Assembly (NCBI GenBank): GCA_964057225.1
Contig: OZ059896.1
Span: forward strand, 6,324,001 to 6,388,000
Length of the DNA stretch: 64,000 nucleotides
Origin: Auanema rhodensis
Lineage: Eukaryota > Animalia > Nematoda
Direction: 5' to 3'
Positions within the stretch are counted from its first letter, which is position 1. Each line of letters opens with the position of its first letter. The translations under genes were made by a program, and so were the position numbers. Positions 1 through 41,500 of the stretch are shown piece by piece. The notes below the pieces were generated by a model that was not told where the DNA came from, made no database searches, and saw only the letters and a list, made by a program, of their open reading frames with translations.

Positions 1-489
1 ATTTTAGGTTTTTAAATATTTTTATTGCTTTAATCTCATTTTTTTTGAAGTTAAATCGACTAATATTCTATATTATTGAAAATCTAGTTTTTTTTTTATT
101 TTATATTAGTTTATTGAAGGATTTATTTTAGAATTGTTCCTATCTTTCAATACTTTCAATGTTTTTTTTTTTCAAATAAAAAAAATAGTTTTGGTCAGAA
201 ATATGTTGTTCTACTCTAATATCTTATACTTATACAAAAACCTTAAAAATTTTTCAATATTTTTGACAAAAAATTTAAAATTTTACGATACCCTCAAGTT
301 TCATTTTGAGCTCATTTTACACTAATTTCTGAGCACTGCTTATCTCAGTGCAACAGAAATCTCTTTACTTCACCTATATGAAACCTATTTGAAACGTTTT
401 CTGTTTTAAAATATTCAATTGATTAATAAATTTTATTATTTTTTACTATTTAAAGAAATATTAGTGTTGGGTAATTCAGTTTCCTAATC

Positions 490-2415: not shown

Positions 2416-2446
<31 letters not shown>

Positions 2447-5400
2447 GAAAGTTATGATAAGTTAGGATCTTTCTATTTCGAATAACATTGATTATCATCC
2501 AATTGTGTCTGATAATTGGCCTTATTTTTCTCAAATCTCATTATCTGTCTTATATTTTCTCTTTTTCTTGTTCAAATGAATTAGAAAGATAAAAAACTTT
2601 ATCAATTAAGAGATTAATGAACATTTGACGATTTATTACAACTTTTTCAACATATTCAGATTATTTTTTCTTTTTAGTCAAGACCACCTGAAGGTTTTAA
2701 CTCATCGGCTTTACCTTTCCAAGCTGATCCCAGAGTTAAACATCTCCAATATAATTCTCCAATGGGATTATATTCCAATGCTAATGTTGCTGAAAGTTAT
2801 AATCAGCAAACTGCAGGATATGTTGATTCTCAAGCGTAAGTTAAAACTTTCTTTTTCTTTTCACTTTCAAACGTATAATTATTAAAAATATTTTTATATG
2901 AATACAGTACATTTACAATTTTTATTATAATTTTCATAAAATAATGAGATAGTTATATGTATATTCATGAGTTATCATCAAAAGGCATATCAATTATATT
3001 TATCATTTCATCCTATTTCTTAATTTTTCTGAAAATAAAAATATAACTTATAAGAAAATAATAAAGAAAATCAAAAAATAATACCTCTTCCGGTTTTATT
3101 GCTTCTTCTTCTTCTACTTTTGGTTCATTTGTATCTTTTTGAATTTCTTGTTTTATTTCATTATTATCAATCATTTCATCTGGTTTTGTTACTTCAATCA
3201 TATCCTTACCAAGATCATTTGTAACTTCTTTTAAATTAGCATTATTAACTTTATCTTCTGATTCCTCTGATTCAGAGACTATTTCACTAGAATCAGCAGG
3301 TTTCAAATTTCTGAATTCTTTTGAAAATTTAACTTCGAAATCTTCAGCAAGACGATTTAAAATATCTTTTTCGTCTGTTGTCAGATCTTTTAATGCTTTT
3401 GCAATCTGAAAATTTAAAAAAAAAATCAACAATTAATAATTAAATTCACATATTCTCTGACAATGTCTCGATTCTCAAATAGTCCACCTTCTTTAAAAAA
3501 GTCAAAAAATGATTGAGCAGCTTCTTTCGTCTAAAATATTTATATATAAATTATATAAGTTATTAGCTACTATTCCTATAATTTTGAAACTCAACTTATA
3601 TACATATGAAAGAAATTTTATACGAACTTTGCAACTTGTGAAATTAAAATTTACCTTTCCGTTTAATTTTTCAATAGACTTCTTAACATCATCAACAATT
3701 TTTATAAAAGATTCCTATAAATAAATATTAAATTAATTATAATTAAAATATAATATAATACCTTATAATTTCCTCTTAAACTATCTAATGTTTGATTAAA
3801 TGCTTTTACCTTTTCTACACTATCTATTCCAGAATCTTGTAAAATATTTTTGAGCTAAATATCAATTTAGTGTTCCTCTTTTTATAAAATAATCTTACAT
3901 CTGTAACCATTTTTTGATTATATACTCTATCTTCCATAGGAAGTTCTGAATCATTATCAGCTGGACGAGCATAGACGGATGAAATGAAAAACAGAATACA
4001 GATTAAGATTTGCATTTTTTTCCTTAAAATTATAAAAAATAAAAACAAATTGCAAATTAAAGTTTGAATAGAATAAGAAAACTAAAAATAATTTTTTTTC
4101 CATTAAACATATGTATATGTATGTATCTAGAATACCTTTTATACTTATTTCATATAATCTCTTATAGATAGACTATCCCATTTTATCCTTTTTTTTGTTC
4201 AAAAACGAGAATTATGATGATTCATTGAAAATTTAAATTAATCTCTACTTATATTACTTTATAATAGATTTTAAAATATTTTAAAATCAATTAGAAAACA
4301 ACTATGTTGTTTCTTAACATTTTTTTATTTTAATTAATATATTTTATTCAGTTCCCATTGAATATTCCTATTTCAGTGCTCAACATGCTCAAGATCAACC
4401 CAGCTATCTTCGTAGCGAAACATTACGTCTCGTAAAAGAGCAGGAAGCTCAAAGAGGTTTGTTTGATTTTCAAATTTCTTTTTAATATTTAAGAAGAAAA
4501 ATATTTTAACGAAAGCCATCATCATCTCATCTTTCAATTGATTTGTAAATCAAACCCAACGATAGAAGAAAGAAAAAATAGAAATTATATACATACGTCA
4601 ATATGAATGAATAGTATTATTCAAAAAATTTGGTTATATTCTAAAAATTTAAACAAGATTAGAATTGAGGTCGCCAAGAGATTACGCAAGATTTCTACTC
4701 TTAAATCTCTATTTCATTTCTCATTTCAACAAATTCTACAATACAAGTGAAAGAGGGGAGGAAGGTTTCAGAAGGAAATAGAAGAGAAATATGATTTTTA
4801 CAATTAAATCAACCGGTTACTCTAGATCTCATGATGGTAAAGATTATGATGACGATGATAAACCTTATAAACTATATACAAATATTGTTTGGAAGTTTTA
4901 AAATTAATATTTCGGTTCAATTTTATTGTGCGGGAATATAAATTTAAATAAAAAAAAAGAATATTTATATTTAATATTTATTGATAAATGTAAATTCCAT
5001 AAAATAAAAATATAATTTTAAGGTCCTCCAACACTTTCACAGCATCCAAATCCTGCTGGTCTTCCTCTATGCTTTGTGTGCAATCGTAAAATCTTGTAAG
5101 TTCAATTTTCACTTCTTTCCATTGAAATCAAATGTAAAGTAGAAAAGTTTGTGATGTTCTATAAGAAATTACAAAGAATATTATATTTAGATATATATAT
5201 ATATTCATATATGTATATTGTATAATATTTATAAGACAAACTTGTAATACAAATACTAAAACAGAAGATTATCTATGTTTTTCAAAGCAATATTATCTTA
5301 ATATTATCTTAATGATATTAATATGAAAAACAAATAGGAAAATAGCTTTTTCTTACTGCTGGGGAAAATAAGAATTGCTCTCTTTCTCTCACACACGCAT

Positions 5401-6434: not shown

Positions 6435-8797
6435 AATAAAAAGTGAAAAAGAAAGAAAGAAACATAAATTAAGAATTAATAACTGAAAGATAGTAAAAAT
6501 ATCAACCATTCTAAATTTCAAACTTTTGGAAAATAAGATGTAGTCACGTAAAAGTTCACGTAAAATGAGAATGAACATAAATGGAAAATGCGATATTCGA
6601 GAAATTATTCCGGATATATCATCATCGAAAGAGAAACTTCAAGTAAATATATAAAAAAAATAAATATATGTATATATATTTATATAAGTTATATTACTAT
6701 ACATTATAGTTAATTTAGTTTTATATAATATTCTAATATTTATGTTTATTCAAAAGAAATTTTCTTTTTTTGATGCGGAGGTGACGATAAGACGGATGGT
6801 AAAATGAACATCATCCGGTTTCTACTAAAACATAGTTGGTTTCATGGCAAATGAATATGAGTTATCTTATATATAGTTATATATCTATCTATATATTGTA
6901 AAATAAGAAGAAAATAACTAGTAAAATAACTTTTTTATACTTTTATATATAAAAATATGTTAAAAATGAAATAAAAAAGAACAACAATTAAAAATAAGAT
7001 TAAAAAATGATAAGATCAATCTTATTTCAATAAAAGAAGTATATAAAAGATATACTACTTATTTTTATTTATTATAATACAAAGAATATTTATTAAAAAT
7101 GAAAAATAATAATATTATATTAAACTTTAATCAAAAATGAATGATTATCAAAGAATTATATCTATAGCTATAAGATTTCTTTAAATATACTTATAGTATA
7201 GTTATATAGTTATATGTATTCAATTCATAGAGCATTTATACATAAATCTGAATCGAAAAACTTCTGGAAAAAACAACAAAAAACTTTTTTTCAGAGGAGT
7301 TATGGCTAGAGCTGCTGGGCATGACCTGCATGCGGATTGTTTCCAATGCGCTACTTGCGGCAATAGCTTAAAGAATGTTGGACATCATTTTGTTGAACGT
7401 AAGCTTGTTTTTACTGTTTTATTTTACATTTTTAGTTGAAAATTAAAATTAAAATCCGATGAAAACAGAAGAATGAACAAATGAACAAAGTGAATTCGTT
7501 ACATTCGGGAAAAAAACAGAAAAATCCATCGTGAATTTAAACATTTAATCGTGGAAGAAAATACCAATGAAACAACATTTTGAATATTTAACATATTCTT
7601 GAAAATTATTTGTATTTTTTTATAAAACTGACAATAATTTTTATTTGAAATGAAAATGTAAGAGAGAGAAAAAGAGAGAGAAAGATAGAGAGAGAAAGAA
7701 AGAGGGAAAGAAAGAGAGAGTCAACACGATTGAACGAAGAAGGAAAAGATGAATGAATAACGGTTATGATGAAGTGAAATGAAATAATTTAATGTGCCAG
7801 TTAAAATGAGTTTTAAGTTGATTAGGTTTCTAAGCTTCAAATGAGCTTTCTTAAACTTGTGAATTTGAACTGAAACTAACAAAAGCGGAAGAAGTTTCAT
7901 TGCTTTATGAAGATGTAAAGACATCGTAATGTAAATTGGTCATTCCTTTAAGAGAGAAAAGTTGAAAGAAAAGAGGTTCAGGAGAACTAAAGGGGATAAA
8001 GATAAAATTACATTGAAGCTAAGAGAATGAATAAGAAGTTGGAGATGAAGGGTTAAATGAAAGTCAAGTTTGTTAGGAGGTAATATGAAATAAAGAAAAG
8101 GGAGGGGGTGGTAGGGGTGGAGCTGAGCTAATAGGAGGAGCTTGTGAGAGCTCTAATACTAGTTTACGTACATATTCAGCTTAATATTGACTATATACGG
8201 TAATAAGAAAATAAGAAAAAGCAATAAGAAGAGTAAGAGAAGAAGAGAAATGATGTCATCACTTGTTAAAAGATACTTGTATTATAATAAAAAATCTTTT
8301 AATGAAATTTTATAAAAAATTGATTATATTTTAATAAATATAAATAATCTATATATTATAAAAAGATTAAAAAAATAAATTTATTAAATTTTGAATGAAA
8401 ATCTAAAATGATATTCTATAGAATGATATTTAAGATAAATTCTATTGTGATATCCATGGACGTCAAAAGAAAGGTTTGACTTCAGCTGGTGGACCAGGAA
8501 TAGATCCCAATTTGGTTGTGTAAGTATATTCATTTGTTACTAAACTATTCTTAAATAAACACATAGTTTATATACATAAATATATAACTAAGTAGATGTT
8601 TAATATTGTATTGTCTGAGTTCTCATTTGTTTATAATTAAAATAGAACTTATGAACTTTTAATGAGAACGACAACAAAACTTTTGAAATAATTAAAAAGA
8701 TAACAACATTCGTAGTACATAAGTTTATACTTACTTACTTACTTATATCATATAACTTTATCTAATTTTCATTTATATTTAAAAATATCTGACTATA

Positions 8798-8843
<46 letters not shown>

Positions 8844-11800
8844 TATATGTATAATAGGTTCAGAAAAATAAGTAAAAAAACAATTTGAACTGAGTCTTTT
8901 GTATTAAATTGCTTTTCAAATCATAAATCTTTTCATAAATAAGGTAATTTTGATGAAATGTTCAAGATCGATTCAAATATTCAATATTTGGCTAAGGTCA
9001 TTCTTTTTATTTTTTTGAATATAACAGTAATGTGATCTATATCTTCGAACAAAACTAAAGATTGGAAAAATATTTCAAAAAGCTTATGAATGAGATCATA
9101 AAAGGATGTATGAAGTGAAGATGTAAGAAAAAAACTTTATAAATTCAGTATTACTCCTATTCTACAGATCAAAAATGAAAATTTTTATGAGAGTACGATG
9201 AAGCATATAAAGTTTTTGAATTAGAACTTGAAGTTTTATGATTAAGTACATGATGTAATCATAATCCTCTTCTTCTTTTTTTAATTAAAAGATACTGATG
9301 TCATTACTATCTTGTAAAAAAGTAAGAATATTCTATTCAATATTTTTAATTTTATATATTATAATATTAAGAAGAAAACTATAATAATTATTTACATATA
9401 TAGATATATATAAATATATTTTAATATATAAATTATACTTATATACTTATTTTATAATATTCAAATTTTTTCAATATATTTCAGTTATATGATGCGAAAT
9501 TTAAATTTTCGTATTAACCTAAAAACTAATATTTATGAAAAATAATGTTTATTTCCAGACAAACACCACCAACTGCAGCTCATCCTGTACGAGTACAGGA
9601 GAATGTTCAATCATTCTATCAGCCAAATATTCTTACCAGACGTCAACCGACAACACCAATTCAAACTAATAGTTATACATCTAATCATCAGATTAATGTA
9701 AATCTTACAAATCCAAAAACACAAGGACCAATCAGGTAATTTTTGAAATATTCTTTTCCAAAAAAAACAACAAAAGAAAAAACTGGAATTATTATTTTAT
9801 AATAAATAGAAAATAATATCTTAAACTATATTAATTTACTAAAAATTAATTTTCAAAATAAATTAATGAAACAAAGAAAAAAAATCAAATTTCAAAAATT
9901 GTCATTTATTTTTTTAATAAATACTATAAAATTAAAAGAATTTTTGTTATTTAAATGTATAAATTCATATTATTTTGTCAAAATAAAAGCACAACTAAAA
10001 TACAATTTAAGTAATTGCTTTGTGAACTGAACTTCAATTTTTAGTTTAAAATTCTAAGAAAAATATCTCGGACTATTATTCTTAGTCTGGTCATTTGTTA
10101 CCAGTCTTCATCAAATATTAAAAGAAAAAATATTAAAATACTATTGCAGTACTACATTATAGATTAAAAAAAACTATTTGTAAACTAATAATAGTAAATG
10201 AATTAGTTTAAGAAATAAGAAACTGATCTTTAAAGCTCTAATTATGTAGCTTCTTTTATGACTTTGAAGCTTAATTATGTTGTTGAAAACGTCCTTCAGA
10301 TCATCAATTTTGAAATTCAATTGCATAGTAGTACTGAGAAAGAAAGAAAAGTTCAATAAAGGTCTTAGAATTCAATTACCTTAACAGAATTAATGTTTTT
10401 TTTTTTGTATTAAAAATGTATTAAATGATTTTGAACTTTGAAGACAAAATTCAGAGAAATATTTGTAAATGCATGACAATTTTGAATAAAATGAGAACAT
10501 TAAGAAATAAAAATAATTTATGAAATTATATTTTTTAACTATTTTATATAATTATTCATAATGTCATTTATTTAATCTGTTGTAGTCCTGCTCAACGAGG
10601 GGTACCAACCAATAATATCTATGCTGGTGATCATGGTAGCTCTTCCAATGTGTCTCCACGAAGCTCGTCTTTCAACTACCAGCATCAGAATAGCTCTGCT
10701 CAACCTCAGATACAGCAGCAGCATCAACAGCATCAGCATTTGGAAAACTCTCGACCTCAATATGGTGGCAACACTGGAGTTACATCAACTAATTATAGCT
10801 ACAACTCCACTTCAACAGCTACTTCGGGAGCTGTACCAGCCCCACCAACTCAAGCACCACCACCTTTGCCAACAAATAATCAACGTGAGTTGTCTAGTTT
10901 TATACAAACCATAGATTTATGTGCATTTGCTTTGCTTTATGTTTGAGTTTTGCATGATTTTGTCGTTTAATTTCTATTTTTATTTGTTAAGAAGGGCTTG
11001 AAGTCAACACATGTCAACCTCTTCAACACCCGCATCATCTAGAAGTTATACAATCAGATGCTGTCTATGTCTCACCACGTCCACACGGTACTGTCTAGTT
11101 TCCTTGTCCTTCGTATGAAAACACTTATTTATGAAAACAAAAATATAATTTTTATCAAATATTCAATTAATAATCTATGTCCATTTGTCTATTGTCTGTT
11201 CTCTTTTAGAATCTCGTGTACCTGCCTCAGTTCGAAGCGCTGTCTCGCCCCGTCCGGGACGAGCGCCACGTAACTGGCCACCAGCGCCATCAAACCCTAC
11301 ATTGAATCGTTATTGGATTATTGATCCCGTTGGACAAGCAAACACTGAAAAGAATATCAATAATCAACCGAAATCGTTGCAAGAGCTTATACAACAAGAA
11401 GAACAAGCTCAACCATCTCGTTATGTCGAATCATACATAGTGCCTTCCAAAGAGAAACCGAAACAAGATAATACCAATCAGATTGATGCAAAAGAACCAA
11501 AAATTCATGATGGAATTCATTGGACAGTAATATCTGGTCCAGTCAAAGTGCTTCCAGATACAATACCACCAGCTACTCCTATACCATCTCCCAGATTGAA
11601 ATCACCTGCCCAGGATTCAATGCCTCCTCTGTTACCACAACTAAAGGTTTCAGAAGTATTAAGTAAAGATATTTCTGAAGTTGTTTCTAGTACAACAAAT
11701 TCAAGAACAAATATATTATGTAATAGATCTACTGCAAATAATTTACCAGTTCGTTCAATTGGAGAAATAGCAACAGATAAAAACGTCATTCCGAAAATAG

Positions 11801-25483: not shown

Positions 25484-27071
25484 CTGGAATGATTAAATTT
25501 CATGTTCAATTTGGGTAATATGAGCAATGCAATTTGAAATTGAACTTTGGTATAAAAAGTACACGATTTCTTATTTTTAAATATATTAAACGGAATATTT
25601 ATAAGAATATTAAAAATATAATATATAATTATAAATATATATATATATATATGCAACATGAATTAGACTAATATTCTGAGATCAACGGATTCAACTACTA
25701 TACATGTCTGATGTAGGATTCAGGCTGTTGAAAATCAGAATAAACATTTGATCAAAACGAAAATTGGATTCCAACTAGAAGTAACGATTCGAAACTGTTC
25801 TTATATGGCCTATCAGAAAGAGGAGGTACCATCATTTGCATTTTGACATGAAAAACGTTGAATAAGAAGATGAGAATGGTGATTGTTAGAGGCAACAAGC
25901 AATTAAACAGGAAAAGTTATTGGAAGAAACTAGAGAGGAAATAGAAATGAAAATACATTGTAGGAAAAGAAAGAGAAAGAGTGAGAGAGAGAGAGAGAGA
26001 GGAATAGAAAGAAATAAGAAATTGAGAAATAAAAAGAGATTGAAAATGATACAAGAACTTCTTCAAATCTATTTACGCAATAAGAAATCCTCGTAACTTT
26101 TTTCATTTGAAAGACAAGCGGAAAAACGCGTGTGTATGTTGACCAAGATAAGTAGTTCTATCCTCTTTATGCAACATGAATCATATATAGCAACATGAAA
26201 GCAAAAAAACTATATGTTGATATATAATTTATAATTCAACAACTTTCTTTCTCCTCAAACTCTATACTGATCAGAACTTATGTTTTCCGATCATGTAAGG
26301 GTTTATATCCATCTTCAACTACAAGTAAATACATATATGATTTTTATAAATTTTAATTTTTCATGGAAATGAAATACTTCACTTATCTTACTTCATTATT
26401 TTAACAAAAAAAAACGATCAAGGTCAATATTTCATAAAAAAAAACAAAAATTAAAACAATCTTCTTGTTATGTGTTTTTTCTTCTTTATAATTCAATAGA
26501 AAACTACTACTATTTCTTTTACGAAAAGAAGAAGAAAAAAGAAATCGTTTCGCTCATCTGTAAATCGTTGATGATGCATTTGAAATGAATTGCCACATAA
26601 AGCAGCATCGTTTTGAGTTTCAAAAAATATGAAGGACATTCGAGAAAATTTATAAAAATATCTTGTAAACCTTCATTCATTCCATCTATCTATAAACCTT
26701 CTAAGCTATTCCTTTTTCAGTTGTCGCTTATTTTTTTTGAAATGTTACCACTGTTCAATAACCGGACACCTTTTTTTGTTCTACCTGCTTGACTATGCAT
26801 TTATACAATTTGGAATTGAATTAATCATTAAAAAATCTTGTATTTCATCTTTTTCTTTCTTTTTTTAATAATATAATTTAATAATATTTTTAGATATTTA
26901 TTTTATGATATCAGATAAATATACTTTATAAATAATAACAAGTATATTATAATATATATTTTTTTATTTTAAGATTTATTTCTGAAAAAAAAAATATAAT
27001 ATAAAATATGTTATATAAGATTTGAATACAGCATATTTTTAATTGAATATATTTCATGATCGGGGAGAAAT

Positions 27072-27396
27072 AGTCCAGGAACAAAATAGTCGAGAGCAGA
27101 ACCGAGGAAGAACCGAAGAGTCGAGGAAGAACCAAGAAGTCCAGAAGGAACCAGATTAGGTCCGTGAACCAAAGCCGAAGAGCCGAGGAAGAACCAACAA
27201 GTCGAAAGCAGAGTCGAGGAAGAACCAACGAGTCGAAAGCAGAGTCGAGGAAGAACCACTGAGTCGAGGAAGAACCGAAGAGTCGAGGAAGAACCAAGAA
27301 GTCCAGAAGGAACCAGATTGGGTCCGTGAATCAAAGCCGAAGAGTCGAGGAAGAACCTAAGAGCCGAGGAAGAACCAAGAAGTCCAGAAGGAACCA
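27072..27396 (-). repeat. Short copy of degenerate ~19-bp repeat (GAGTCGAGGAAGAACC..), reverse complement of 35149-38460
   Basis: GAAGTCCAGAAGGAACCAGATTAGGTCCGTGAACC and GAGTCGAGGAAGAACC units are reverse complements of units in the right-hand block. Confidence 0.9.
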
Positions 27397-30060
27397 GAGT
27401 AGGTCCGTGGTCCAGAAGATCCATGATTGGAAGTAGCCATCAAGGCGTAACGTCGTACACGTTGCTCAATCCTATGAATTTCAAGAATACAAATAGATTA
27501 TAATTTCGAATTCTTACCTAAAATTAGAAATACGAAGAGAGAGTAGGTCCGAGGTCCAGAAGATCCATGGTTGGAAGCAGCTATCGTACCGTCGTACACG
27601 TTGCTCAATCCTATGAATTTCAAGAATACAAATAGATTATAATTTCAAATTCTTACCTAAAATCAGAAATACGAAGAGAGAGTAGGTCCGAGGTCCAGAA
27701 GATCCATGATTGGAAGCAGCTATCGTACCGTCGTACACGTTGCTCAATCCTATGAATTTCAAGAATACAAATAGATTATAATTTCAAATTCTTACCTAAA
27801 ATCAGAAATACGAAGAGAGAGTAGGTCCGAGGTCCAGAAGATCCATGATTGGAAGCAGCTATCGTACCGTCGTACACGTTGCTCAATCCTATGAATTTCA
27901 AGAATACAAATAGATTATAATTTCAAATTCTTACCTAAAATCAGAAATACGAAGAGAGAGTAGGTCCGAGGTCCAGAAGATCCATGGTTGGAAGCAGCTA
28001 TCGTACCGTCGTAAACGTTGCTCAATCCTATGAATTTCAAGAATACAAATAGATTATAATTTCAAATTCTTACCTAAAATCAGAAATACGAAGAGAGAGT
28101 AGGTCCGTGGTCCAGAAGATCCATGATTGGAAGTAGCCATCAAGGTGTAACGTCGTACACGTTGCTCAATCCTATGAATTTCAAGAATACAAATAGATTA
28201 TAATTTCAAATTCTTACCTAAAATCAGAAATACGAAGAGAGAGTAGGTCCGTGGTCCAGAAGATCCATGATTGGAAGTAGCCATCAAGGTGTAACGTCGT
28301 ACACGTTGCTCAATCCTATGAATTTCAAGAATACAAATAGATTATAATTTCAAATTCTTACCTAAAATCAGAAATACGAAGAGAGAGTAGGTCCGTGGTC
28401 CAGAAGATCCATGATTGGAAGTAGCCATCAAGGTGTAACGTCGTACACGTTGCTCAATCCTATGAATTTCAAGAATACAAATAGATTATAATTTCAAATT
28501 CTTACCTAAAATCAGAAATACGAAGAGAGAGTAGGTCCGAGGTCCAGAAGATCCATGGTTGGAAGCAGCTATCGTACCGTCGTACACGTTGCTCAATCCT
28601 ATGAATTTCAAGAATACTAATAGATTATAATTTCAAATTCTTACCTAAAATCAGAAATACGAAGAGAGAGTAGGTCCGAGGTCCAGAAGATCCATGGTTG
28701 GAAGCAGCTATCGTACCGTCGTAAACGTTGCTCAATCCTATGAATTTCAAGAATACAAATAGATTATAATTTCAAATTCTTACCTAAAATCAGAAATACG
28801 AAGAGAGAGTAGATCCACTGTCCAGAAGATCCATGATTGGAAGTAGCCATCAAGGCGTAACGTCGTACACGTTGCTCAATCCTATGAATTTCAAGAATAC
28901 TAATAGATTATAATTTCAAATTCTTACCTAAAATCAGAAATACGAAGAGAGAGTAGATCCACTGTCCAGAAGATCCATGATTGGAAGTAGCCATCAAGGC
29001 GTAACGTCGTACACGTTGCTCAATCCTATGAATTTCAAGAATACTAATAGATTATAATTTCAAATTCTTACCTAAAATCAGAAATACGAAGAGAGAGTAG
29101 GTCCGAGGTCCAGAAGATCCATGGTTGGAAGCAGCTATCGTACCGTCGTAAACGTTGCTCAATCCTATGAATTTCAAGAATACAAATAGATTATAATTTC
29201 AAATTCTTACCTAAAATCAGAAATACGAAGAGAGAGTAGGTCCGAGGTCCAGAAGATCCATGGTTGGAAGCAGCTATCGTACCGTCGTACACGTTGCTCA
29301 ATCCTATGAATTTCAAGAATACTAATAGATTATAATTTCAAATTCTTACCTCAAATCAGAAATACGAAGAGAGAGTAGGTCCGAGGTCCAGAAGATCCAT
29401 GGTTGGAAGCAGCTATCGTACCGTCGTACACGTTGCTCAATCCTATGAATTTCAAGAATACTAATAGATTATAATTTCAAATTCTTACCTAAAATCAGAA
29501 ATACGAAGAGAGAGTAGGTCCGAGGTCCAGAAGATCCATGGTTGGAAGCAGCTATCGTACCGTCGTAAACGTTGCTCAATCCTATGAATTTCAAGAATAC
29601 AAATAGATTATAATTTCAAATTCTTACCTAAAATCAGAAATACGAAGAGAGAGTAGATCCACTGTCCAGAAGATCCATGATTGGAAGTAGCCATCAAGGC
29701 GTAACGTCGTACACGTTGCTCAATCCTATGAATTTCAAGAATACTAATAGATTATAATTTCAAATTCTTACCTAAAATCAGAAATACGAAGAGAGAGTAG
29801 ATCCACTGTCCAGAAGATCCATGATTGGAAGTAGCCATCAAGGCGTAACGTCGTACACGTTGCTCAATCCTATGAATTTCAAGAATACTAATAGATTATA
29901 ATTTCAAATTCTTACCTAAAATCAGAAATACGAAGAGAGAGTAGATCCACTGTCCAGAAGATCCATGATTGGAAGTAGCCATCAAGGCGTAACGTCGTAC
30001 ACGTTGCTCAATCCTATGAATTTCAAGAATACTAATAGATTATAATTTCAAATTCTTACC
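27397..30060 (-). repeat. Tandem array of 139/144-bp monomers, 19 copies (left arm)
   Basis: TCCAGAAGATCC recurs at 27411, 27555, 27694, 27833 and so on (periods 144 and 139). The two monomer types differ by a 5-bp indel. Confidence 0.97.
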
Positions 30061-30555
30061 AGGTAATGAGCACTTTTACAATAACAGAGTGACTATAACA
30101 GAGTGAGCTTGGTCGTTTGTTGAATAGATATAATTATCTGGACATTAGATATATTAAAACATGTTACACAGATCATCTCCGTTTTCGAATTATCGGAGTT
30201 ATACAATAATGAAATCAAAAATTATAAACTCACGTACTCTTTATAATATCTGTAATTTTAAAATGAATAGTTAGAACAAGAACTGAAACTTAGGTATGTG
30301 GCTTGTTGAAGCCATATTACAGCTGCAGTTGTTCTAGTCTTCGTTTTGCAGAACTATTATATATAAATTATGTTCTCGGTTAATCTTGTCGACTTTGCTC
30401 TCTGAGAATGAGCTTAGATAAAAAGGGTTCAAGGTAAATACTAAATTACCTAGCTCATACATTTGTTTTTCCACAAGTTCTTCAGAGCTGACAAGAGACT
30501 TTGGGGTCTGAAGAGCTCAGGAGCTGTCGACCTATTCGGATGGCGACAATTGGAC

Positions 30556-30623
30556 AAATGACTGTCAACTGAAAAATAATTAGCTTATATACCCCTTGAC
30601 GAGCAGACCACGTAAACCACGTT
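30556..30623 (-). promoter_or_regulatory. Mirror copy of the putative core promoter, facing leftward
   Basis: Reverse complement of 31140-31207 (TATA at 30584-30591). Confidence 0.55.
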
Positions 30624-31139
30624 TGCGTGAAATTTTAAAAATTCTAAAAACAAAAACCGGCTGTACATGATTTGAAAATCATAGGAAATGAATGAGAATT
30701 GTGTTTAACTAATGTTTTTATTTTTATTTTAAGGAATGATATTATATTTTTAAGGTTCGTATTGTTATTGATATTGTTTTATATTGTTTGAAAATAACAA
30801 ATATTTTTATATAATAATAATTTTCACCTAAATATTTGGGTTTTTTCATTTATTTCAAGTTGGTTAGTACTAACAAATATTTAAATTATTTGAAACATAT
30901 AAATGTTATGAGAATTTAGTATAATTTAATATTTATGCAACACAGACTAAGGCAAATTTATTCTAATTTGGTCTTAAGTTCGGCATTATTGAAATTATAA
31001 GAAAACCGAATATTATCAAAATAGATTCAAAAATATCTCTAGTTATTAGTTTATTTCAAAAAATTTTGTGTTCATTTCCTATGATTTTCAAATCATGTAC
31101 AGCCGGTTTTTGTTTTTAGAATTTTTAAAATTTCACGCA

Positions 31140-31207
31140 AACGTGGTTTACGTGGTCTGCTCGTCAAGGGGTATATAAGCTAATTATTTTTCAGTTGACA
31201 GTCATTT
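31140..31207 (+). promoter_or_regulatory. Putative Pol II core promoter facing outward (2x ACGTGG, TATATAAG, Inr-like TCATTT)
   Basis: GGGGTATATAAGC with TATA at 31172-31179; TCATTT with its A at 31204, 32 nt from the TATA start; tandem ACGTGG motifs just upstream. Confidence 0.55.
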
Positions 31208-31702
31208 GTCCAATTGTCGCCATCCGAATAGGTCGACAGCTCCTGAGCTCTTCAGACCCCAAAGTCTCTTGTCAGCTCTGAAGAACTTGTGGAAAAACAA
31301 ATGTATGAGCTAGGTAATTTAGTATTTACCTTGAACCCTTTTTATCTAAGCTCATTCTCAGAGAGCAAAGTCGACAAGATTAACCGAGAACATAATTTAT
31401 ATATAATAGTTCTGCAAAACGAAGACTAGAACAACTGCAGCTGTAATATGGCTTCAACAAGCCACATACCTAAGTTTCAGTTCTTGTTCTAACTATTCAT
31501 TTTAAAATTACAGATATTATAAAGAGTACGTGAGTTTATAATTTTTGATTTCATTATTGTATAACTCCGATAATTCGAAAACGGAGATGATCTGTGTAAC
31601 ATGTTTTAATATATCTAATGTCCAGATAATTATATCTATTCAACAAACGACCAAGCTCACTCTGTTATAGTCACTCTGTTATTGTAAAAGTGCTCATTAC
31701 CT

Positions 31703-34700
31703 GGTAAGAATTTGAAATTATAATCTATTAGTATTCTTGAAATTCATAGGATTGAGCAACGTGTACGACGTTACGCCTTGTTGGCTATTTCCAATCATGG
31801 ATCTTCTGGACCACGGACCTACTCTCTCTTCGTATTTCTGATTTTAGGTAAGAATTTGAAATTATAATCTATTTGTATTCTTGAAATTCATAGGATTGAG
31901 CAACGTGTACGACGGTACGATAGCTGCTTACAACCATGGATCTTCTGGACCACGGACCTACTCTCTCTTCGTATTTCTGATTTTAGGTAAGAATTTGAAA
32001 TTATAATCTATTAGTATTCTTGAAATTCATAGGATTGAGCAACGTGTACGACGGTACGATAGCTGCTTCCAACCATGGATCTTCTGGACCTCGGACCTAC
32101 TCTCTCTTCGTATTTCTGATTTTAGGTAAGAATTTGAAATTATAATCTATTTGTATTCTTGAAATTCATAGGATTGAGCAACGTGTACGACGGTACGATA
32201 GCTGCTTCCAACCATGGATCTTCTGGACCTCGGACCTACTCTCTCTTCGTATTTCTGATTTTAGGTAAGAATTTGAAATTATAATCTATTTGTATTCTTG
32301 AAATTCATAGGATTGAGCAACGTGTACGACGTTACGATAGCTGCTTCCAACCATGGATCTTCTGGACCACGGACCTACTCTCTCTTCGTATTTCTGATTT
32401 TAGGTAAGAATTTGAAATTATAATCTATTTGTATTCTTGAAATTCATAGGATTGAGCAACGTGTACGACGGTACGATAGCTGCTTCCAACCATGGATCTT
32501 CTGGACCTCGGACCTACTCTCTCTTTGTATTTCTGATTTTAGGTAAGAATTTGAAATTATAATCTATTAGTATTCTTGAAATTCATAGGATTGAGCAACG
32601 TGTACGACGGTACGATAGCTGCTTCCAACCATGGATCTTCTGGACCACGGACCTACTCTCTCTTCGTATTTCTGATTTTAGGTAAGAATTTGAAATTATA
32701 ATCTATTAGTATTCTTGAAATTCATAGGATTGAGCAACGTGTACGACGTTACGCCTTGATGGCTACTTCCAATCATGGATCTTCTGGACAACGGACCTAC
32801 TCTCTCTTCGTATTTCTGATTTTAGGTAAGAATTTGAAATTATAATCTATTAGTATTCTTGAAATTCATAGGATTGAGCAACGTGTACGACGGTACGATA
32901 GCTGCTTCCAACCATGGATCTTCTGGACCTCGGACCTACTCTCTCTTCGTATTTCTGATTTTAGGTAAGAATTTGAAATTATAATCTATTTGTATTCTTG
33001 AAATTCATAGGATTGAGCAACGTGTACGACGGTACGATAGCTGCTTCCAACCATGGATCTTCTGGACCTCGGACCTACTCTCTCTTCGTATTTCTGATTT
33101 TAGGTAAGAATTTGAAATTATAATCTATTTGTATTCTTGAAATTCATAGGATTGAGCAACGTGTACGACGGTACGATAGCTGCTTCCAACCATGGATCTT
33201 CTGGACCTCGGACCTACTCTCTCTTCGTATTTCTGATTTTAGGTAAGAATTTGAAATTATAATCTATTTGTATTCTTGAAATTCATAGGATTGAGCAACG
33301 TGTACGACGGTACGATAGCTGCTTCCAACCATGGATCTTCTGGACCTCGGACCTACTCTCTCTTCGTATTTCTGATTTTAGGTAAGAATTTGAAATTATA
33401 ATCTATTTGTATTCTTGAAATTCATAGGATTGAGCAACGTGTACGACGTTACGCCTTGATGGCTACTTCCAATCATGGATCTTCTGGACAACGGACCTAC
33501 TCTCTCTTCGTATTTCTGATTTTAGGTAAGAATTTGAAATTATAATCTATTTGTATTCTTGAAATTCATAGGATTGAGCAACGTGTACGACGGTACGATA
33601 GCTGCTTCCAACCATGGATCTTCTGGACCTCGGACCTACTCTCTCTTCGTATTTCTGATTTTAGGTAAGAATTTGAAATTATAATCTATTTGTATTCTTG
33701 AAATTCATAGGATTGAGCAACGTGTACGACGGTACGATAGCTGCTTCCAACCATGGATCTTCTGGACCTCGGACCTACTCTCTCTTCGTATTTCTGATTT
33801 TAGGTAAGAATTTGAAATTATAATCTATTTGTATTCTTGAAATTCATAGGATTGAGCAACGTGTACGACGGTACGATAGCTGCTTCCAACCATGGATCTT
33901 CTGGACCTCGGACCTACTCTCTCTTCGTATTTCTGATTTTAGGTAAGAATTTGAAATTATAATCTATTTGTATTCTTGAAATTCATAGGATTGAGCAACG
34001 TGTACGACGGTACGATAGCTGCTTCCAACCATGGATCTTCTGGACCTCGGACCTACTCTCTCTTTGTATTTCTGATTTTAGGTAAGAATTTGAAATTATA
34101 ATCTATTAGTATTCTTGAAATTCATAGGATTGAGCAACGTGTACGACGGTACGATAGCTGCTTCCAACCATGGATCTTCTGGACCTCGGACCTACTCTCT
34201 CTTTGTATTTCTGATTTTAGGTAAGAATTTGAAATTATAATCTATTAGTATTCTTGAAATTCATAGGATTGAGCAACGTGTACGACGGTACGATAGCTGC
34301 TTCCAACCATGGATCTTCTGGACCACGGACCTACTCTCTCTTCGTATTTCTGATTTTAGGTAAGAATTTGAAATTATAATCTATTTGTATTCTTGAAATT
34401 CATAGGATTGAGCAACGTGTACGACGTTACGCCTTGATGGCTACTTCCAATCATGGATCTTCTGGACAACGGACCTACTCTCTCTTCGTATTTCTGATTT
34501 TAGGTAAGAATTTGAAATTATAATCTATTTGTATTCTTGAAATTCATAGGATTGAGCAACGTGTACGACGGTACGATAGCTGCTTCCAACCATGGATCTT
34601 CTGGACCTCGGACCTACTCTCTCTTCGTATTTCTGATTTTAGGTAAGAATTTGAAATTATAATCTATTTGTATTCTTGAAATTCATAGGATTGAGCAACG

Positions 34701-35148
34701 TGTACGACGGTACGATAGCTGCTTCCAACCATGGATCTTCTGGACCTCGGACCTACTCTCTCTTCGTATTTCTGATTTTAGGTAAGAATTTGAAATTATA
34801 ATCTATTTGTATTCTTGAAATTCATAGGATTGAGCAACGTGTACGACGGTACGATAGCTGCTTCCAACCATGGATCTTCTGGACCTCGGACCTACTCTCT
34901 CTTCGTATTTCTGATTTTAGGTAAGAATTTGAAATTATAATCTATTTGTATTCTTGAAATTCATAGGATTGAGCAACGTGTACGACGTTACGCCTTGATG
35001 GCTACTTCCAATCATGGATCTTCTGGACAACGGACCTACTCTCTCTTCGTATTTCTGATTTTAGGTAAGAATTTGAAATTATAATCTATTTGTATTCTTG
35101 AAATTTATAGGATTGAGCAACGTGTACGACGGTACGATGGCTGCTTCC
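31703..35148 (+). repeat. Tandem array of 139/144-bp monomers, ~25 copies, inverted relative to 27397-30060
   Basis: Unit GTAAGAATTTGAAATTATAATCTATTTGTATTCTTGAAATTCATAG-GATTGAGCAACGTGTACGAC..TTTCTGATTTTAG, the reverse complement of the left-array unit. Confidence 0.97.
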
Positions 35149-38100
35149 TTCTGGAGTTCTTTTTTCTTCCTTGACTCGTCGGTTCTTCCTCGGCTCTTTG
35201 GTTCTTCCTCTAATCTTCGGTTCTTCCTCGGTTCTGCTCTCGACTCGTCGGTTCTTCCTCGGCTCTTTGGTTCTTCCTAGACTCTTCGGTTCTTTCTCGC
35301 CTGTTCGAGTTTTCCTCTACTCGTCGGTTCTTCCTCGGCTCTTTGGTTCTTCCTCTAATCTTCGGTTTTGGTTCACGGACCTAATCTGGTTCCTTCAGGA
35401 CTTCTTGGTTCTTCCTTGACTCGTCGGTTCTTCCTCGATTCTTCGGTAATTCCTCGGTTCTGCTCTCAACTCGTCGGTTCTTCCTCGGCTCTTTGGTTCT
35501 TCCTAGACTCTTCGGTTCTTTCTCGCCTGTTCGAGTTTTCCTCTACTCTTCGGTTTTGGTTCACGGACCTGATCTGGTTCATTCTGGACTTCTTTCCCCT
35601 TCCTCGACTCTCCGTTCTTCCTCGACTCTTCGGTTCTTCCTCGACTCTGCTCTCGACTCGTCGGTTTTTCCTCGGCTCTTTGGCTCTTCTTCGACTCTTC
35701 GGTTTTGGTTCACGGACCTAATCTGGTTTCTTCTGGACTTCTTGGTTCTTCTTCGACTCGTCGGTTTTTCCTCGACTCTGCTCTCGACTCGTCGGTTCTT
35801 CTTCTACTCTTCGGTTTTGGTTCACGGACCCAATCTGGTTTCTTCTGGACTTCTTGGTTCTTCCTTGACTCGTCGGTTCTTCCTCGGCTCTTTGGTTCTT
35901 CCTCTAATCTTCGGTTTTGGTTCACGGACCTAATCTGGTTCCTTCAGGACTTCTTGGTTCTTCCTTGACTCGTCGGTTCTTCCTCGATTCTTCGGTTCTT
36001 CCTCGGTTCTGCTCTCGACTCGTCGGTTCTTCCTCGGCTCTTTGGTTCTTCCTCTAATCTTTGGTTTTGGTTCACGGACCTAATCTGGTTCCTTCGGGAC
36101 TTCTTGGTTCTTCCTTGAGTCGTCGGTTCTTCCTCGGTTCTTCGGTTCTTCCTAGACTCTTCGGTTCTTTCTCGCCTGTTCGAGTTTTCCTCTACTCTTC
36201 GGTTTTGGTTCACGGACCTGATCTGGTTCATTCTGGACTTCTTGCCCCTTCCTCGACTCTCCGTTCTTCCTCGACTCTTCGGTTCTTCCTCGACTCTGCT
36301 CTCGACTCATCGGTTTTTTCTCGACTCTGCTCTCGGCTCTTTGGTTCTTCTTCGACTCTTTGGTTCTTCTTCGACTCTTTGGTTCTTCTTCGACTCTTTG
36401 GTTCTTCTTCGACTCTTTGGTTCTTCTTCGACTCTTTGGTTCTTCTTCGACTCTTTGGTTCTTCTTTGACTCTTCGGTTTTCGTTCACGGACCTAATCTG
36501 GTTTCTTCTGGACTTCTTGGTTCTTCCTCGACTCTTCGGTTTTTCCTCGACCCTGCTCTCGACTCGTCGGTTCTTCTTCGACTCTTTGGTTCTTCTTCGA
36601 CTCTTTGGTTCTTCTTCGACTCTTTGGTTCTTCTTTGACTCTTCGGTTTTCGTTCACGGACCTAATCTGGTTTCTTCTGGACTTCTTGGTTCTTCCTCGA
36701 CCCTGCTCTCGACTCGTCGGTTCTTCTTCTACTCTTCGGTTTTGGTTCACGGACCCAATCTGCTTTCTTCTGGACTTCTTGCTTTTTCCTTGACTCGTCG
36801 GTTCTTTCTCGCCTGTTCGAGTTTTCCTCTACTCTTCGGTTCTGGTTCACGGACCTAATCTGGTTTCTTCTGGACTTCTGACCCTTCCTCGACTCTCCGT
36901 TCTTCCTCGACTCTGCTCTCGACTCGTCGGTTTTTCCTCGGCTCTTTGGTTGTTCTTCGACTTTTCGGTTTTGGTTCATGGACCTAATCTGGTTCCTTCA
37001 GGACTTCTTGGTTCTTCCTTGACTCGTCGGTTCTTCCTCGATTCTTCGGTTCTTCCTCGGTTCTGCTCTCGACTCGTCGGTTCTTCCTCGGCTCTTTGGT
37101 TCTTCCTCTAATCTTTGGTTTTGGTTCACGGACCTAATCTGGTTCCTTCGGGACTTCTTGGTTCTTCCTTGAGTCGTCGGTTCTTCCTCGGTTCTTCGGT
37201 TCTTCCTAGACTCTTCGGTTCTTTCTCGCCTGTTCGAGTTTTCCTCTACTCTTCGGTTTTGGTTCACGGACCTGATCTGGTTCATTCTGGACTTCTTGCC
37301 CTTCCTCGACTCTCCGTTCTTCCTCGACTCGTCGGTTTTTTCTCGACTCTGCTCTCGACTCGTCGGTTTTTCCTCGGCTCTTTGGTTCTTCTTCGACTTT
37401 TCGGTTTTGGTTCATGGACCTAATCTGGTTCCTTCAGGACTTCTTGGTTCTTCCTTGACTCGTCGGTTCTTCCTCGATTCTTCGGTTCTTCCTCGGTTCT
37501 GCTCTCGACTCGTCGGTTCTTCCTCGGCTCTTTGGTTCTTCCTCTAATCTTTGGTTTTGGTTCACGGACCTAATCTGGTTCCTTCGGGACTTCTTGGTTC
37601 TTCCTTGAGTCGTCGGTTCTTCCTCGGTTCTTCGGTTCTTCCTAGACTCTTCGGTTCTTTCTCGCCTGTTCGAGTTTTCCTCTACTCTTCGGTTTTGGTT
37701 CACGGACCTGATCTGGTTCATTCTGGACTTCTTGCCCTTCCTCGACTCTCCGTTCTTCCTCGACTCGTCGGTTTTTTCTCGACTCTGCTCTCGACTCGTC
37801 GGTTTTTCCTCGGCTCTTTGGTTCTTCTTCGACTCTTTGGTTCTTCTTCGACTCTTCGGTTTTGGTTCACGGACCTAATCTGGTTTCTTCTGGACTTCTT
37901 GGTTCTTCCTCGACTCTTCGGTTTTTCCTCGACCCTGCTCTCGACTCGTCGGTTTTGGTTCATGGACCTAATCTGGTTCATTCTGGACTTCTGACCCTTC
38001 CTCGACTCTCCGTTCTTCCTCGACTCTTCGGTTCTTCCTCGACTCTGCTCTCGACTCGTCGGTTTTTCCTCGGCTCTTTGGTTGTTCTTCGACTTTTCGG

Positions 38101-38460
38101 TTTTGGTTCATGGACCTAATCTGGTTCATTCTGGACTTCTGACCCTTCCTCGACTCTCCGTTCTTCCTCGACTCTTCGGTTCTTCCTCGACTCTGCTCTC
38201 GACTCGTCGGTTTTTTCTCGACTCTGCTCTCGACTCGTCGGTTTTTCCTCGGCTCTTTGGTTGTTCTTCGACTTTTCGGTTTTGGTTCATGGACCTAATC
38301 TGGTTCATTCTGGACTTCTGACCCTTCCTCGACTCTCCGTTCTTCCTCGACTCTTCGGTTCTTCCTCGACTCTGCTCTCGACTTGTCGGTTCTTCCTCGA
38401 CTCTTCGGTTATTCCTCAACTCTTCGGTTCTTCCAGGGCACTTTGATTCTTCCTTTGACT
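35149..38460 (+). repeat. Pyrimidine-rich degenerate minisatellite (~19-bp TTCTTCCTCGACTCTTCGG core) with internal block duplications
   Basis: The core is interspersed with GGTTCACGGACCTAATCTGGTT modules. Identical 95-aa ORF translations at 35944, 36998 and 37434 mark duplicated blocks. Confidence 0.93.
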
Positions 38461-38513
38461 CGTTGGTTTTTCCTACCCCATCCACAAGATTTCTTCCGTG
38501 GTCCAGCAGATCC

Positions 38514-41500
38514 TTTGTGAACGAACTTTTTTTCAGAAAAACGACTTTTTTGTGAACAATTCTTGGGGATGGGGTCGATATAAACCGTTTTTCCGGAAAC
38601 ACGAGAATTCCTAGCCAAATCTGACTTGAAAATTCCGATTCTACACATCTGAATACCCAACCTCAAGGTGTTTTTGTTTTATTTTAGTTGATGATCTTGG
38701 AGTAAATCGGACATTCACCGGGCACAACGTGCCTACAGCCTGAACTTTTTTGTGAACAAATCTTCTGAATTGGGTCGATATAAACCTTTTTTTCGGAAAA
38801 AGGAGAATTCCTAGCCAAATCTGACTCGGAAATTCCGATTCTACACATCTGAATACCCAACCTCGGGGTGTTTTTGTTTTATTTAAGTTGATGATCTTGA
38901 AGTAAATAGCAGATTCACCGGGCACAACGTGCCTACAGCCTGAACTTTTTTGTGAACAAATCTTCTGAATTGGGTCGATATAAACCTTTTTTTCCGAAAA
39001 AGGAGAATTCCTAGTCAAATCTGACTTGGAAATTCCGATTCTACACATCTGAATACCCAACCTCGAGCTGTTTTTGTTTTATTTTAGTTGATGATCTTGG
39101 AGTAAATAGCAGATTCACCGGGCACAACGTGCCTACAGCCTGAACTTTTTTGTGAACAAATCTTGTGGATGGGGCCGATATAAACCTTTTTTTCGGAAAA
39201 AGGAGAATTCCTAGTCAAATCTGACTTGGAAATTCCGATTCTACACATCTGAATACCCAACCTCGAGGTGTTTTTGTTTTATTTTAGTTGATGATCTTGG
39301 AGTAAATCGGACATTCACCGGGCACAACGTGCCTACAGCCTGAACTTTTTTGTGAACAAATCTTCTGAATTGGGTCGATATAAACCTTTTTTTCGGAAAA
39401 AGGAGAGTTCCTAGCCAAATCTGACTCGGAAATTCCGATTCTACACATCTGAATACCCAATCTCGGGGTGTTTTTGTTTTATTTTAGTTGATGATCTTGG
39501 AGTAGATAGCAGATTCACCGGGCACAACGTGCCGACAGCCTGAACTTTTTTGTGAACAAATCTTGTGGATGGGGCCGATATAAACCTTTTTTTCGGAAAA
39601 AGGAGAATTCCTAGTCAAATCTGACTTGGAAATTCCGATTCTACACATCTGAATACCCAACCTCGAGCTGTTTTTGTTTTATTTTAGTTGATGATCTTGG
39701 AGTAAATAGCAGATTCACCGGGCACAACGTGCCTACAGCCTGAACTTTTTTGTGAACAAATCTTGTGGATGGGGCCGATATAAACCTTTTTTTCGGAAAA
39801 AGGAGAATTCCTAGCCAAATCTGACTCGAAAAATTCCGATTCTACACATCTGAATACCCAACCTCGGGGTGTTTTTGTTTTATTTTAGTTGATGATCTTG
39901 GAGTAAATATCAGATTCACCGGGCACAACGTGCCTACAGCCTGAACTTTTTTGTGAACAAATCTTGTGGATGGGGCCGATATAAACCTTTTTTTCAGAAA
40001 AAGGAGAATTCCTAGTCAAATCTGACTTGGAAATTCCGATTCTACACATCTGAATACTCAACCTCGAGGTGTTTTTGTTTTATTTTAGTTGATGATCTTG
40101 GAGTAAATCGGACATTCACTGGGCACAACGTGCCTACAGCCTGAACTTTTTTGTGAACAAATCTTGTGGATGGGGCCGATATAAACCTTTTTTTCAGAAA
40201 AAGGAGAATTCCTAGTCAAATCTGACTTGGAAATTCCGATTCTACACATCTGAATACTCAACCTCGAGGTGTTTTTGTTTTATTTTAGTTGATGATCTTG
40301 GAGTAAATCGGACATTCACCGGGCACAACGTGCCTACAGCCTGAACTTTTTTGTGAACAAATCTTCTGAATTGGGTCGATATAAACCTTTTTTTCGGAAA
40401 AAGGAGAATTCCTAGTCAAATCTGAGTTGGAAATTCCGATTTTACACATCTGAATACTCAACCTCGAGGTGTTTTTGTTTTATTTTAGTTGATGATCTTG
40501 GAGTAAATCGGACATTCACCGGGCACAACGTGCCTACAGCCTGAACTTTTTTGTGAACAAATCTTCTGAATTGGGTCGATATAAACCTTTTTTTCGGAAA
40601 AAGGAGAATTCCTAGTCAAATCTGAGTTGGAAATTCCGATTCTACACATCTGAATACTCAACCTCGAGGTGTTTTTGTTTTATTTTAGTTGATGATCTTG
40701 GAGTAAATCGGACATTCACCGGGCACAACGTGCCTACAGCCTGAACTTTTTTGTGAACAAATCTTCTGAATTGGGTCGATATAAACCTTTTTTTCGGAAA
40801 AAGGAGAATTCCTAGTCAAATCTGAGTTGGAAATTCCGATTTTACACATCTGAATACTCAACCTCGAGGTGTTTTTGTTTTATTTTAGTTGATGATCTTG
40901 GAGTAAATCGGACATTCACCGGGCACAACGTGCCTACAGCCTGAACTTTTTTGTGAACAAATCTTGTGGATGGGGCCGATATAAACCTTTTTTTCGGAAA
41001 AAGGAGAATTCCTAGCCAAATCTGACTTGGAAATTCCGATTCTACACATCTGAATACCCAACCTCGGGGTGTTTTTGTTTTATTTAAGTTGATGATCTTG
41101 GAGTAAATCGGACATTGACCGGGCACAACGTGCCTACAGCCTGAACTTTTTTGTGAACAAATCTTCTGAATTGGGTCGATATAAACCTTTTTTTCGGAAA
41201 AAGGAGAATTCCTAGTCAAATCTGACTTGGAAATTCCGATTCTACACATCTGAATACTCAACCTCGGGGTGTTTTTGTTTTATTTTAGTTGATGATCTTG
41301 GAGTAAATCGGACATTCACCGGGCACAACGTGCCTACAGCCTGAACTTTTTTGTGAACAAATCTTGTGGATGGGGTCGATATAAACCTTTTTTTCGGAAA
41401 AAGGAGAATTCCTAGCCAAATCTGACTCGGAAATTCCGATTCTACACATCTGAATACCCAACCTCGGGGTGTTTTTGTTTTATTTTAGTTGATGATCTTG

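Follow-up and report, generated by a model that had tools for sequence, protein, structure and literature searches.

A 139/144-bp satellite-like array in Auanema rhodense read as the mini-introns and exons of a spliced, apparently non-coding transcript

A 64,000-nt stretch of the genome of the nematode Auanema rhodense (G000:C4:6324001-6388000, here the window) contains two inverted copies of a tandem array with the look of a satellite, its units being 139 or 144 bp long. Each unit consists of a 46-nt segment with the ends of an intron and a "exon" of 93 or 98 nt downstream of it, and RNA contigs from public data support the conclusion that the "satellite" is a series of mini-intron and exon units of one transcript. 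The copy of the array in this window is called W where it has to be told apart from its relatives.

Tandem Repeats Finder (TRF) places the right array at 31703-35148 (24.6 copies, 96% matches) and the left, inverted one at 27396-30060 (18.8 copies, 96% matches). Dissection by script gives 25 of the 46-nt segments in the right arm and 19 in the left, and all 44 start with GT and end with AG. The right-arm units are of 139 nt (19 units) or 144 nt (five units), and so their exons are of 93 and 98 nt. The first base of the right array is at the donor, with CCTG/GTAAGA at 31703/31704, and the join of array to arm is 1 nt before the donor at 31704. Departures near the splice sites, TTTATAG at 35104-35110 in the last right unit and TTTGAG/GT in left unit L4, keep the AG and the GT. 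The make-up of the unit, the start of the array and both variants had been described in an earlier reading of the letters by a model (the sequence-only reading), which also called the 93/98-nt segment GC-richer, and they stand on recounting. Between the arrays are two unique arms, 30060-30692 and 31071-31703, which are inverted and 100% identical around a 378-nt spacer; outside both arrays there are degenerate 19-nt CU-rich repeats (35164-38474 and 27103-27409, TRF), and a 200-bp satellite extends from 38544 to the end of the window. The features, with the evidence for each in brackets, are these:

26975 and 26963, minus strand: AATAAA signals past the left tail (sequence).
27072..27395, minus strand: remainder of the left terminal exon, a short degenerate 19-nt CU-rich tail (TRF, sequence, RNA contig).
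27396..30059, minus strand: left array, 19 introns of 46 nt with 18 internal exons of 93 or 98 nt (TRF, script; RNA variant).
30060..30401, minus strand: left exon 2, AT-rich leader of 342 nt with no difference from the right copy (mirror identity).
30402..30449, minus strand: left intron 1, 48 nt, identical to right intron 1 (mirror identity).
30450..30562, minus strand: left exon 1, conserved leader (mirror identity, family alignment).
30584-30591, minus strand: left TATA box (sequence).
30693..31070, no strand: asymmetric spacer separating the head-to-head genes (mirror identity stops at 30692/31071).
31071..31200, plus strand: right promoter, with a conservation of about 85-100% across 15 or more places in the genome (genome copies; RNA contigs only downstream).
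31172-31179, plus strand: right TATA box, TATATAAG (sequence).
31201..31313, plus strand: right exon 1, leader (RNA contig starts; conserved in 12 copies).
31314..31361, plus strand: right intron 1, 48 nt, GT..AG (removed in four of four runs).
31362..31703, plus strand: right exon 2, AT-rich leader of 342 nt that holds several short upstream open reading frames (contigs unbroken from 31360 to 31702).
31704..35110, plus strand: right array, 25 introns of 46 nt with 24 internal exons, 19 of 93 nt and five of 98 nt (TRF, script, RNA joints).
35111..38474, plus strand: right terminal exon as modelled, a partial unit and about 3.3 kb of degenerate CU-rich 19-nt repeats (TRF, sequence).

The two ends of the locus differ in their surroundings. 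On the minus strand AATAAA is found just past the tail of the left copy; on the plus strand of the window it is missing between 26033 and 45103, and the right copy is without a nearby signal. The 200-bp satellite (127 copies) starts 70 nt past the right CU-rich tail, and fragments of both the satellite and the array exon, in inverted orientation, lie at the junction between them (38474-38544). Judged from this arrangement, the right-hand transcript might read into the satellite.

The ends of the 46-nt segment are by themselves a modest argument. A loose intron-sized GT..AG is present in 48% of dinucleotide-shuffled monomers, and one with strict donor and acceptor consensus in 1.5%, which makes a chance origin of the GT..AG only moderately improbable when the letters alone are considered, and so RNA evidence had to decide. 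It comes from four public runs of one study (2019), X1 to X4, in the form of assembled contigs (8-20 Mb per run) that were aligned to 30900-32960, that is to the first nine of the 25 right-arm units. The runs contain 0.29-0.40 of the words sampled from 31060-35300, where the ceiling with exonic words alone is 0.49. In none of the four runs is there an RNA contig on the promoter or the spacer; the first base that they cover is 31218, or 31224 in X3, some 40 nt past the TATA box. The small contig total, coverage that starts past the TATA box and the removal of two canonical kinds of intron together identify the runs as RNA rather than DNA.

The first of the two kinds is the 48-nt GT..AG intron at 31314-31361 in the unique arm, which is skipped in all four runs (joint 31311>31360, cut +2). 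Exon 2 is then covered by contigs unbroken to 31702-31703, where a second joint, 31702>31749 in X1 and X2, skips 46 nt and connects the unique arm to the first array exon at 31749-31750. Within the array the joint 32822>32869, at the predicted 46-nt junction, has a depth of 380 in X1 and 168 in X4. Contigs of 123 nt (X2 record 8, X3 record 12) amount to one 93-nt period with a 30-nt overlap and so to a closed 93-nt cycle, and the 98-nt exon is also present in the RNA (32727-32821). None of the contig pieces listed for the four runs over 30900-32960 covers a 46-nt segment, and its absence from the RNA, exact and with the flanks joined, is what identifies it as an intron. The exon-exon junction string has no match in the 181-Mb genome at up to one mismatch. 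The sequence-only reading had asked for such junctions in RNA, had expected the joined form to be missing from the genomic array and repeat exons to come in a 93/98-nt ladder, and had named as its refuters retention of the 46-nt segment and a lack of junction reads; its test by junctions comes out positive, and the 93-nt cycle is in keeping with the ladder.

The left copy is expressed. A left-specific variant, GGACCACGG, appears in the RNA contigs, and one contig leads from the last left array exon into the CU-rich tail, its loose-end string being unique to 27369-27406 on the minus strand, which establishes both expression of that copy and its continuation into the tail. As the promoter and leader of the right arm are identical to those of the left, the right arm is probably expressed too. 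Contig depth is 11-27 times higher on array exons than on unique exons, roughly what some 21 repeat exons per leader would give, keeping in mind that contig depth is a poor quantitative measure. As to the wider claim that the 46-nt segment matches 43-48-nt introns of genuine genes in the window, it holds for the one neighbouring intron, of 48 nt, that is verified by RNA; a candidate 43-nt intron at 17683-17641 on the minus strand has the same ends, GTAAGAA..TTTCATAG, as the 46-nt segment, and for the remaining neighbouring genes of the window the heuristic of joining open reading frames across introns was too noisy to use.

With its near-identical monomers arranged head to tail the array has one of the marks of a satellite. 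The other, large non-genic blocks at many loci, was not found: the array is inside a spliced transcription unit, and its only close copy outside the W locus is a fragment of 3.2 units at C4:7.84 Mb. That fragment (L001:2855-3322, C4:7836854-7837321) is promoterless, is of the 144 type and is situated between two inverted copies of a small gene whose protein looks secreted.

The promoter and first exon belong to a family of at least 15 copies. The segment 31060-31320 is found at no fewer than 15 genomic places with 85-100% identity. Almost no variation is seen among the copies in a stretch of about 140 nt ahead of the TATA box and in roughly the first 70 nt of the leader. The places include five head-to-head pairs, one on C4, one on C1 and three on C3, together with single copies on C6, C3, C1 and C4. 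Within the leader, 31214-31239 and its mirror image form an invariant stretch capable of a hairpin, CTGTCGCC..GGTCGACAG, in 12 of 12 aligned copies, a lack of variation that leaves it uninformative on structure; a metagenome scan with the invariant leader pattern gave no match.

Members of the family differ in what follows the leader. The minimal one, L013, has the promoter, a leader exon, a single 46-nt intron ending in CTTGAAATTTACAG and a CU-rich repeat exon, and L002 and L005 have two incipient units. At L005:2560-2740, beside the intact member, there is also an inverted, promoterless partial unit whose donor reads CT in place of GT (CTAAGA, 2620-2740), a single case. At the C1 loci a 160-bp unit, made of the same 46-nt intron and a 114-nt exon, is repeated 10 and nine times in a palindrome (L003:3456-5037 and 7501-8920, L004:3722-4491; units of 160 or 159 bp, exons of 114 or 113 nt), and the array of L004 directly adjoins a 350-bp satellite (1-3718). 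In the C3 pairs it is another module that has been amplified: it is 209 bp long, combines part of exon 1 with the 48-nt intron 1 and the beginning of exon 2, and is present three to four times at L011:992-1632 and L012:1214-2083 (C3:18.70 and 19.03 Mb). Exon-intron modules of the family would thus have been amplified independently at least three times, the W array being one instance. About half of the family loci (L006, L007, L008, L010, L011 and L012) are less than 10 kb from blocks of the 200-bp satellite, in both orientations, and the C3 pairs have that satellite on both flanks, within larger palindromes.

The reading that, in our judgement, is probably correct as a whole is that two head-to-head gene copies are transcribed outward by RNA polymerase II from TATA promoters, the right on the plus and the left on the minus strand. 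The spliceosome would remove the 48-nt first intron and then all of the 46-nt introns, 25 in the right copy and 19 in the left, to leave a non-coding RNA that consists of a run of 93/98-nt exons followed by the CU-rich repeat tail. The array would have arisen by unequal exchange that tandemly amplified the single 46-nt intron ancestral to the family with flanking exon sequence, and each amplified copy would simply inherit functional splice sites. The anatomy, the splicing, the expression of the left arm and the place of the locus in a family of at least 15 copies are observed; use of polymerase II and of the TATA box, the non-coding status and the route of amplification are what we infer.

Several points weigh against it. 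The runs are labelled only "RNA? (a guess)", come from a single study and are contigs rather than reads; contigs lose rare variants, so that some intron retention is possible. The strand was deduced from GT..AG alone, and the RNA view is that of the first nine right-arm units. From the side of the sequence, frame 1 of the 93-nt exon is in register with the ATG-initiated frame of the paralogue L002, and some of the differences between W and C1 look synonymous by eye, for which reason an ancestral or residual coding role is possible.

A different account of why the array is spliced is that splicing itself is selected, with a mini-intron in every repeat shielding germline repeat RNA from silencing by small RNAs and Argonaute proteins, or boosting its expression. 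The sequence-only reading had offered this idea as dense splicing that may sustain transcription through repeats. There is precedent in C. elegans, where splicing marks germline transcripts against Argonaute silencing and 12 small synthetic introns raise lacZ expression above that given by one to four (PMC12055998). Among W, C1, C6a and C6b the intron is always 46 nt and 83-91% identical, whereas for the adjoining exon identity is 54-63% and length ranges from 93 to 131 nt; further, the one copy without the donor GT (CTAAGA, L005:2620-2740) is a decayed, promoterless one. Against this, intron 1 and exon 2, presumably unconstrained and so a measure of background, are also about 81% identical between W and C1, so that the 46-nt intron is not clearly above neutral, and young arrays would retain their splice sites without selection. 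Within the array itself one of 46 intron positions and seven of 93 exon positions are variable, a total of eight for each unit type (Fisher p=0.27); this comparison of intron with exon positions, the form in which the suggested comparison of substitution rates at splice sites and elsewhere was run, has no power either way. It is a fair statement that the 46-nt intron seems to evolve at about the background rate of the family or slightly slower and that the exon core appears unusually free to change, and a variable exon core fits a non-coding exon. Selection for splicing is, on balance, rather unlikely.

An extension of the idea, more speculative and to be taken as distinctly unlikely in its entirety, is that the family is a dedicated transcription module, composed of conserved promoter, leader, a single intron of strictly 46 nt and CU-rich tail and often placed in head-to-head pairs where 200-bp satellite blocks end. 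Its repeated mini-introns would be kept because splicing licenses expression of repeat RNA in the germline of a worm that goes on to discard two thirds of its genome, and the right-hand copy at the present locus, without a poly(A) signal, may read into the satellite.

A protein-coding repeat gene would have a 31-aa repeat (LSNVYDG...FVFLIL) whose hydrophobic stretch spans each exon junction, and its translation would begin at an ATG supplied by the 98-nt exons. Both frames proposed earlier for the 93-nt exon are indeed open (by hand translation, and by script for the first), and the exon is without an ATG. Four of the five 98-nt exons have an overlapping TGA and ATG, the first (R0) being without ATG, and a model of the spliced right arm built by local script contains four internal open reading frames of 156, 218, 125 and 78 aa, each running from the ATG of one 98-nt exon to the TGA of the next and with a repeat reading frame that begins MATSNHGSS. 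Their frame agrees with the ATG frame of L002 and with the open frame of the C1 unit, and a few of the differences look synonymous. But these frames are internal and behind at least eight upstream ATGs, the first eight ATGs of the spliced model opening frames of no more than 27 aa, and in that model no open reading frame that starts in the leader reaches the array. At the 98-nt exons the frame is stopped or shifted, as had been noticed from the letters; the C1 array mixes 160- and 159-nt units and its frame is thereby broken; and between L002 and L005 the candidate frame has a 5-nt indel, with a stop at the splice junction in L005. Pfam gave no domain in single-exon or tail reading frames on either strand. 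Thus no one frame passes from a start codon through the exons, none is kept among paralogues, and protein coding is very unlikely.

The lack of a leader-to-array reading frame, the frame-shifting 98-nt exons, the indels of 1 and 5 nt in paralogues and the lack of a Pfam domain are the grounds on which the spliced repeat RNA is taken as most likely non-coding, in agreement with the earlier proposal of a non-coding transcript. With a promoter of its own, a spliced transcript and no conserved reading frame, it has the marks of a long non-coding RNA. Searches for RNA structure were without result: Rfam has no match at E<=1 in 26900-39000, thermodynamic folding of the exon, spliced exons, unspliced units and intron gave z from -0.9 to +1.05 and no signal, and the fold of the leader alignment has no covariation.

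The palindromic form of the locus raises the alternative that the whole is a mobile element of the foldback type, with tandem repeats in its inverted arms and the RNA as a by-product. The repeat periods do shift from the outside (19/31/50 nt) to the inside (139/144 nt), and the 15 or more genomic copies with five head-to-head pairs would be in keeping with it. Single, non-palindromic members exist, however (L002, L008), the outer ends of three members compared by eye, with no systematic survey, have no common terminal sequence, neither target duplications nor a transposase were seen, and the copies resemble segmental duplicates, which makes a foldback element highly unlikely.

That the array is an untranscribed or unspliced satellite with GT..AG by chance, and that the joined forms derive from DNA (unassembled processed copies or somatic excision), is extremely improbable and largely refuted, for although nearly half of shuffled monomers (48%) have a loose GT..AG, the type of the runs was a guess and the species eliminates somatic DNA, the contigs come to only 8-20 Mb per run, start past the TATA box and leave promoter and spacer uncovered, a second and unrelated 48-nt GT..AG intron is also removed in unique sequence, the junction is missing from the 181-Mb germline assembly, and elimination is known as breakage and telomere addition, not as small internal excision.

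Elimination of DNA is nonetheless part of the setting. The germline genome of A. rhodense is of 180 Mb with 19,554 tRNAs, about 61% of it is eliminated from the soma, and the process is one of breakage with telomere addition (bioRxiv 10.64898/2026.08.27.747507). The break site (SFE) in Oscheius and Auanema is a 29-nt palindrome with a conserved GGC..GCC core (PMC13060919; bioRxiv 10.64898/2026.08.27.747507). Scanning with this generic core, rather than with an A. rhodense matrix, found no GGC(N3-4)GCC in 27072-38474, including the spacer 30693-31070, and by that measure the spacer as an elimination break site is unsupported. The sole GGC(N3-4)GCC of the window, at 520 within 510-539, has partly palindromic flanks (9/13) and is a weak look-alike of the break site.

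Returning to the spliced repeat transcript, the text of the A. rhodense paper has no words for spliced repeats or long non-coding RNAs (bioRxiv 10.64898/2026.08.27.747507). What is apparently new is a satellite-like unit of 139 bp, each copy of which is a mini-intron and an exon of an apparently non-coding RNA, in a gene duplicated head to head; to this can be added what looks, from comparison of its members, like one family with three amplifications of different exon-intron modules. It provides an RNA-backed case in which the "satellite" of a repeat finder is 44 working mini-introns and the exons of a transcript, and repeat masking would conceal both an RNA of fair abundance and a gene family with no fewer than 15 members. 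Three module amplifications in one family would offer a direct view of genes seeding satellites, in a genome of which tandem repeats make up about 61%. The locus would also allow a test in a natural setting of what C. elegans transgenes have suggested, that splicing guards repetitive germline transcripts from silencing.

Tandem arrays of exon and intron are known within protein genes such as those for the kringle IV-2 repeats of human LPA and the spider silk Flag. A further one is Schistosoma SmPoMuc with its repeated exon 2 (PMC2576457). What the A. rhodense array shares with these three is a module of exon and intron amplified head to tail in one transcription unit with every copy spliced, and introns that are homogenised along with the exons, those of Flag being more alike than its exons. 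The difference is that theirs keep one frame and give a protein, whereas the present one mixes exons of 93 and 98 nt, has no start codon leading into it and has paralogues with broken frames; moreover the A. rhodense unit is only 139 bp with a 46-nt intron and resembles a classical satellite.

Long non-coding RNAs built from repeats include FIRRE with its RRD repeats, NORAD, and PNCTR with pyrimidine-rich short tandem repeats. Likeness to them is in being a spliced polymerase II RNA, as the present one would be, with no convincing reading frame and a body of repeat units, and the CU-rich tail is like the pyrimidine-rich repeat RNAs. No sequence relation to them is known, and in contrast to them the repeats here are near-identical, contiguous and split by mini-introns, in a gene that is duplicated head to head. 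Transcribed satellites, including introns in centromeric non-coding RNA, are known from fission yeast dg and Xenopus fcr1. There too a tandem array gives RNA and the splicing machinery is involved, but the A. rhodense array is small (44 units at one locus and a 3-unit fragment), is in a gene with its own promoter, and is spliced at every unit.

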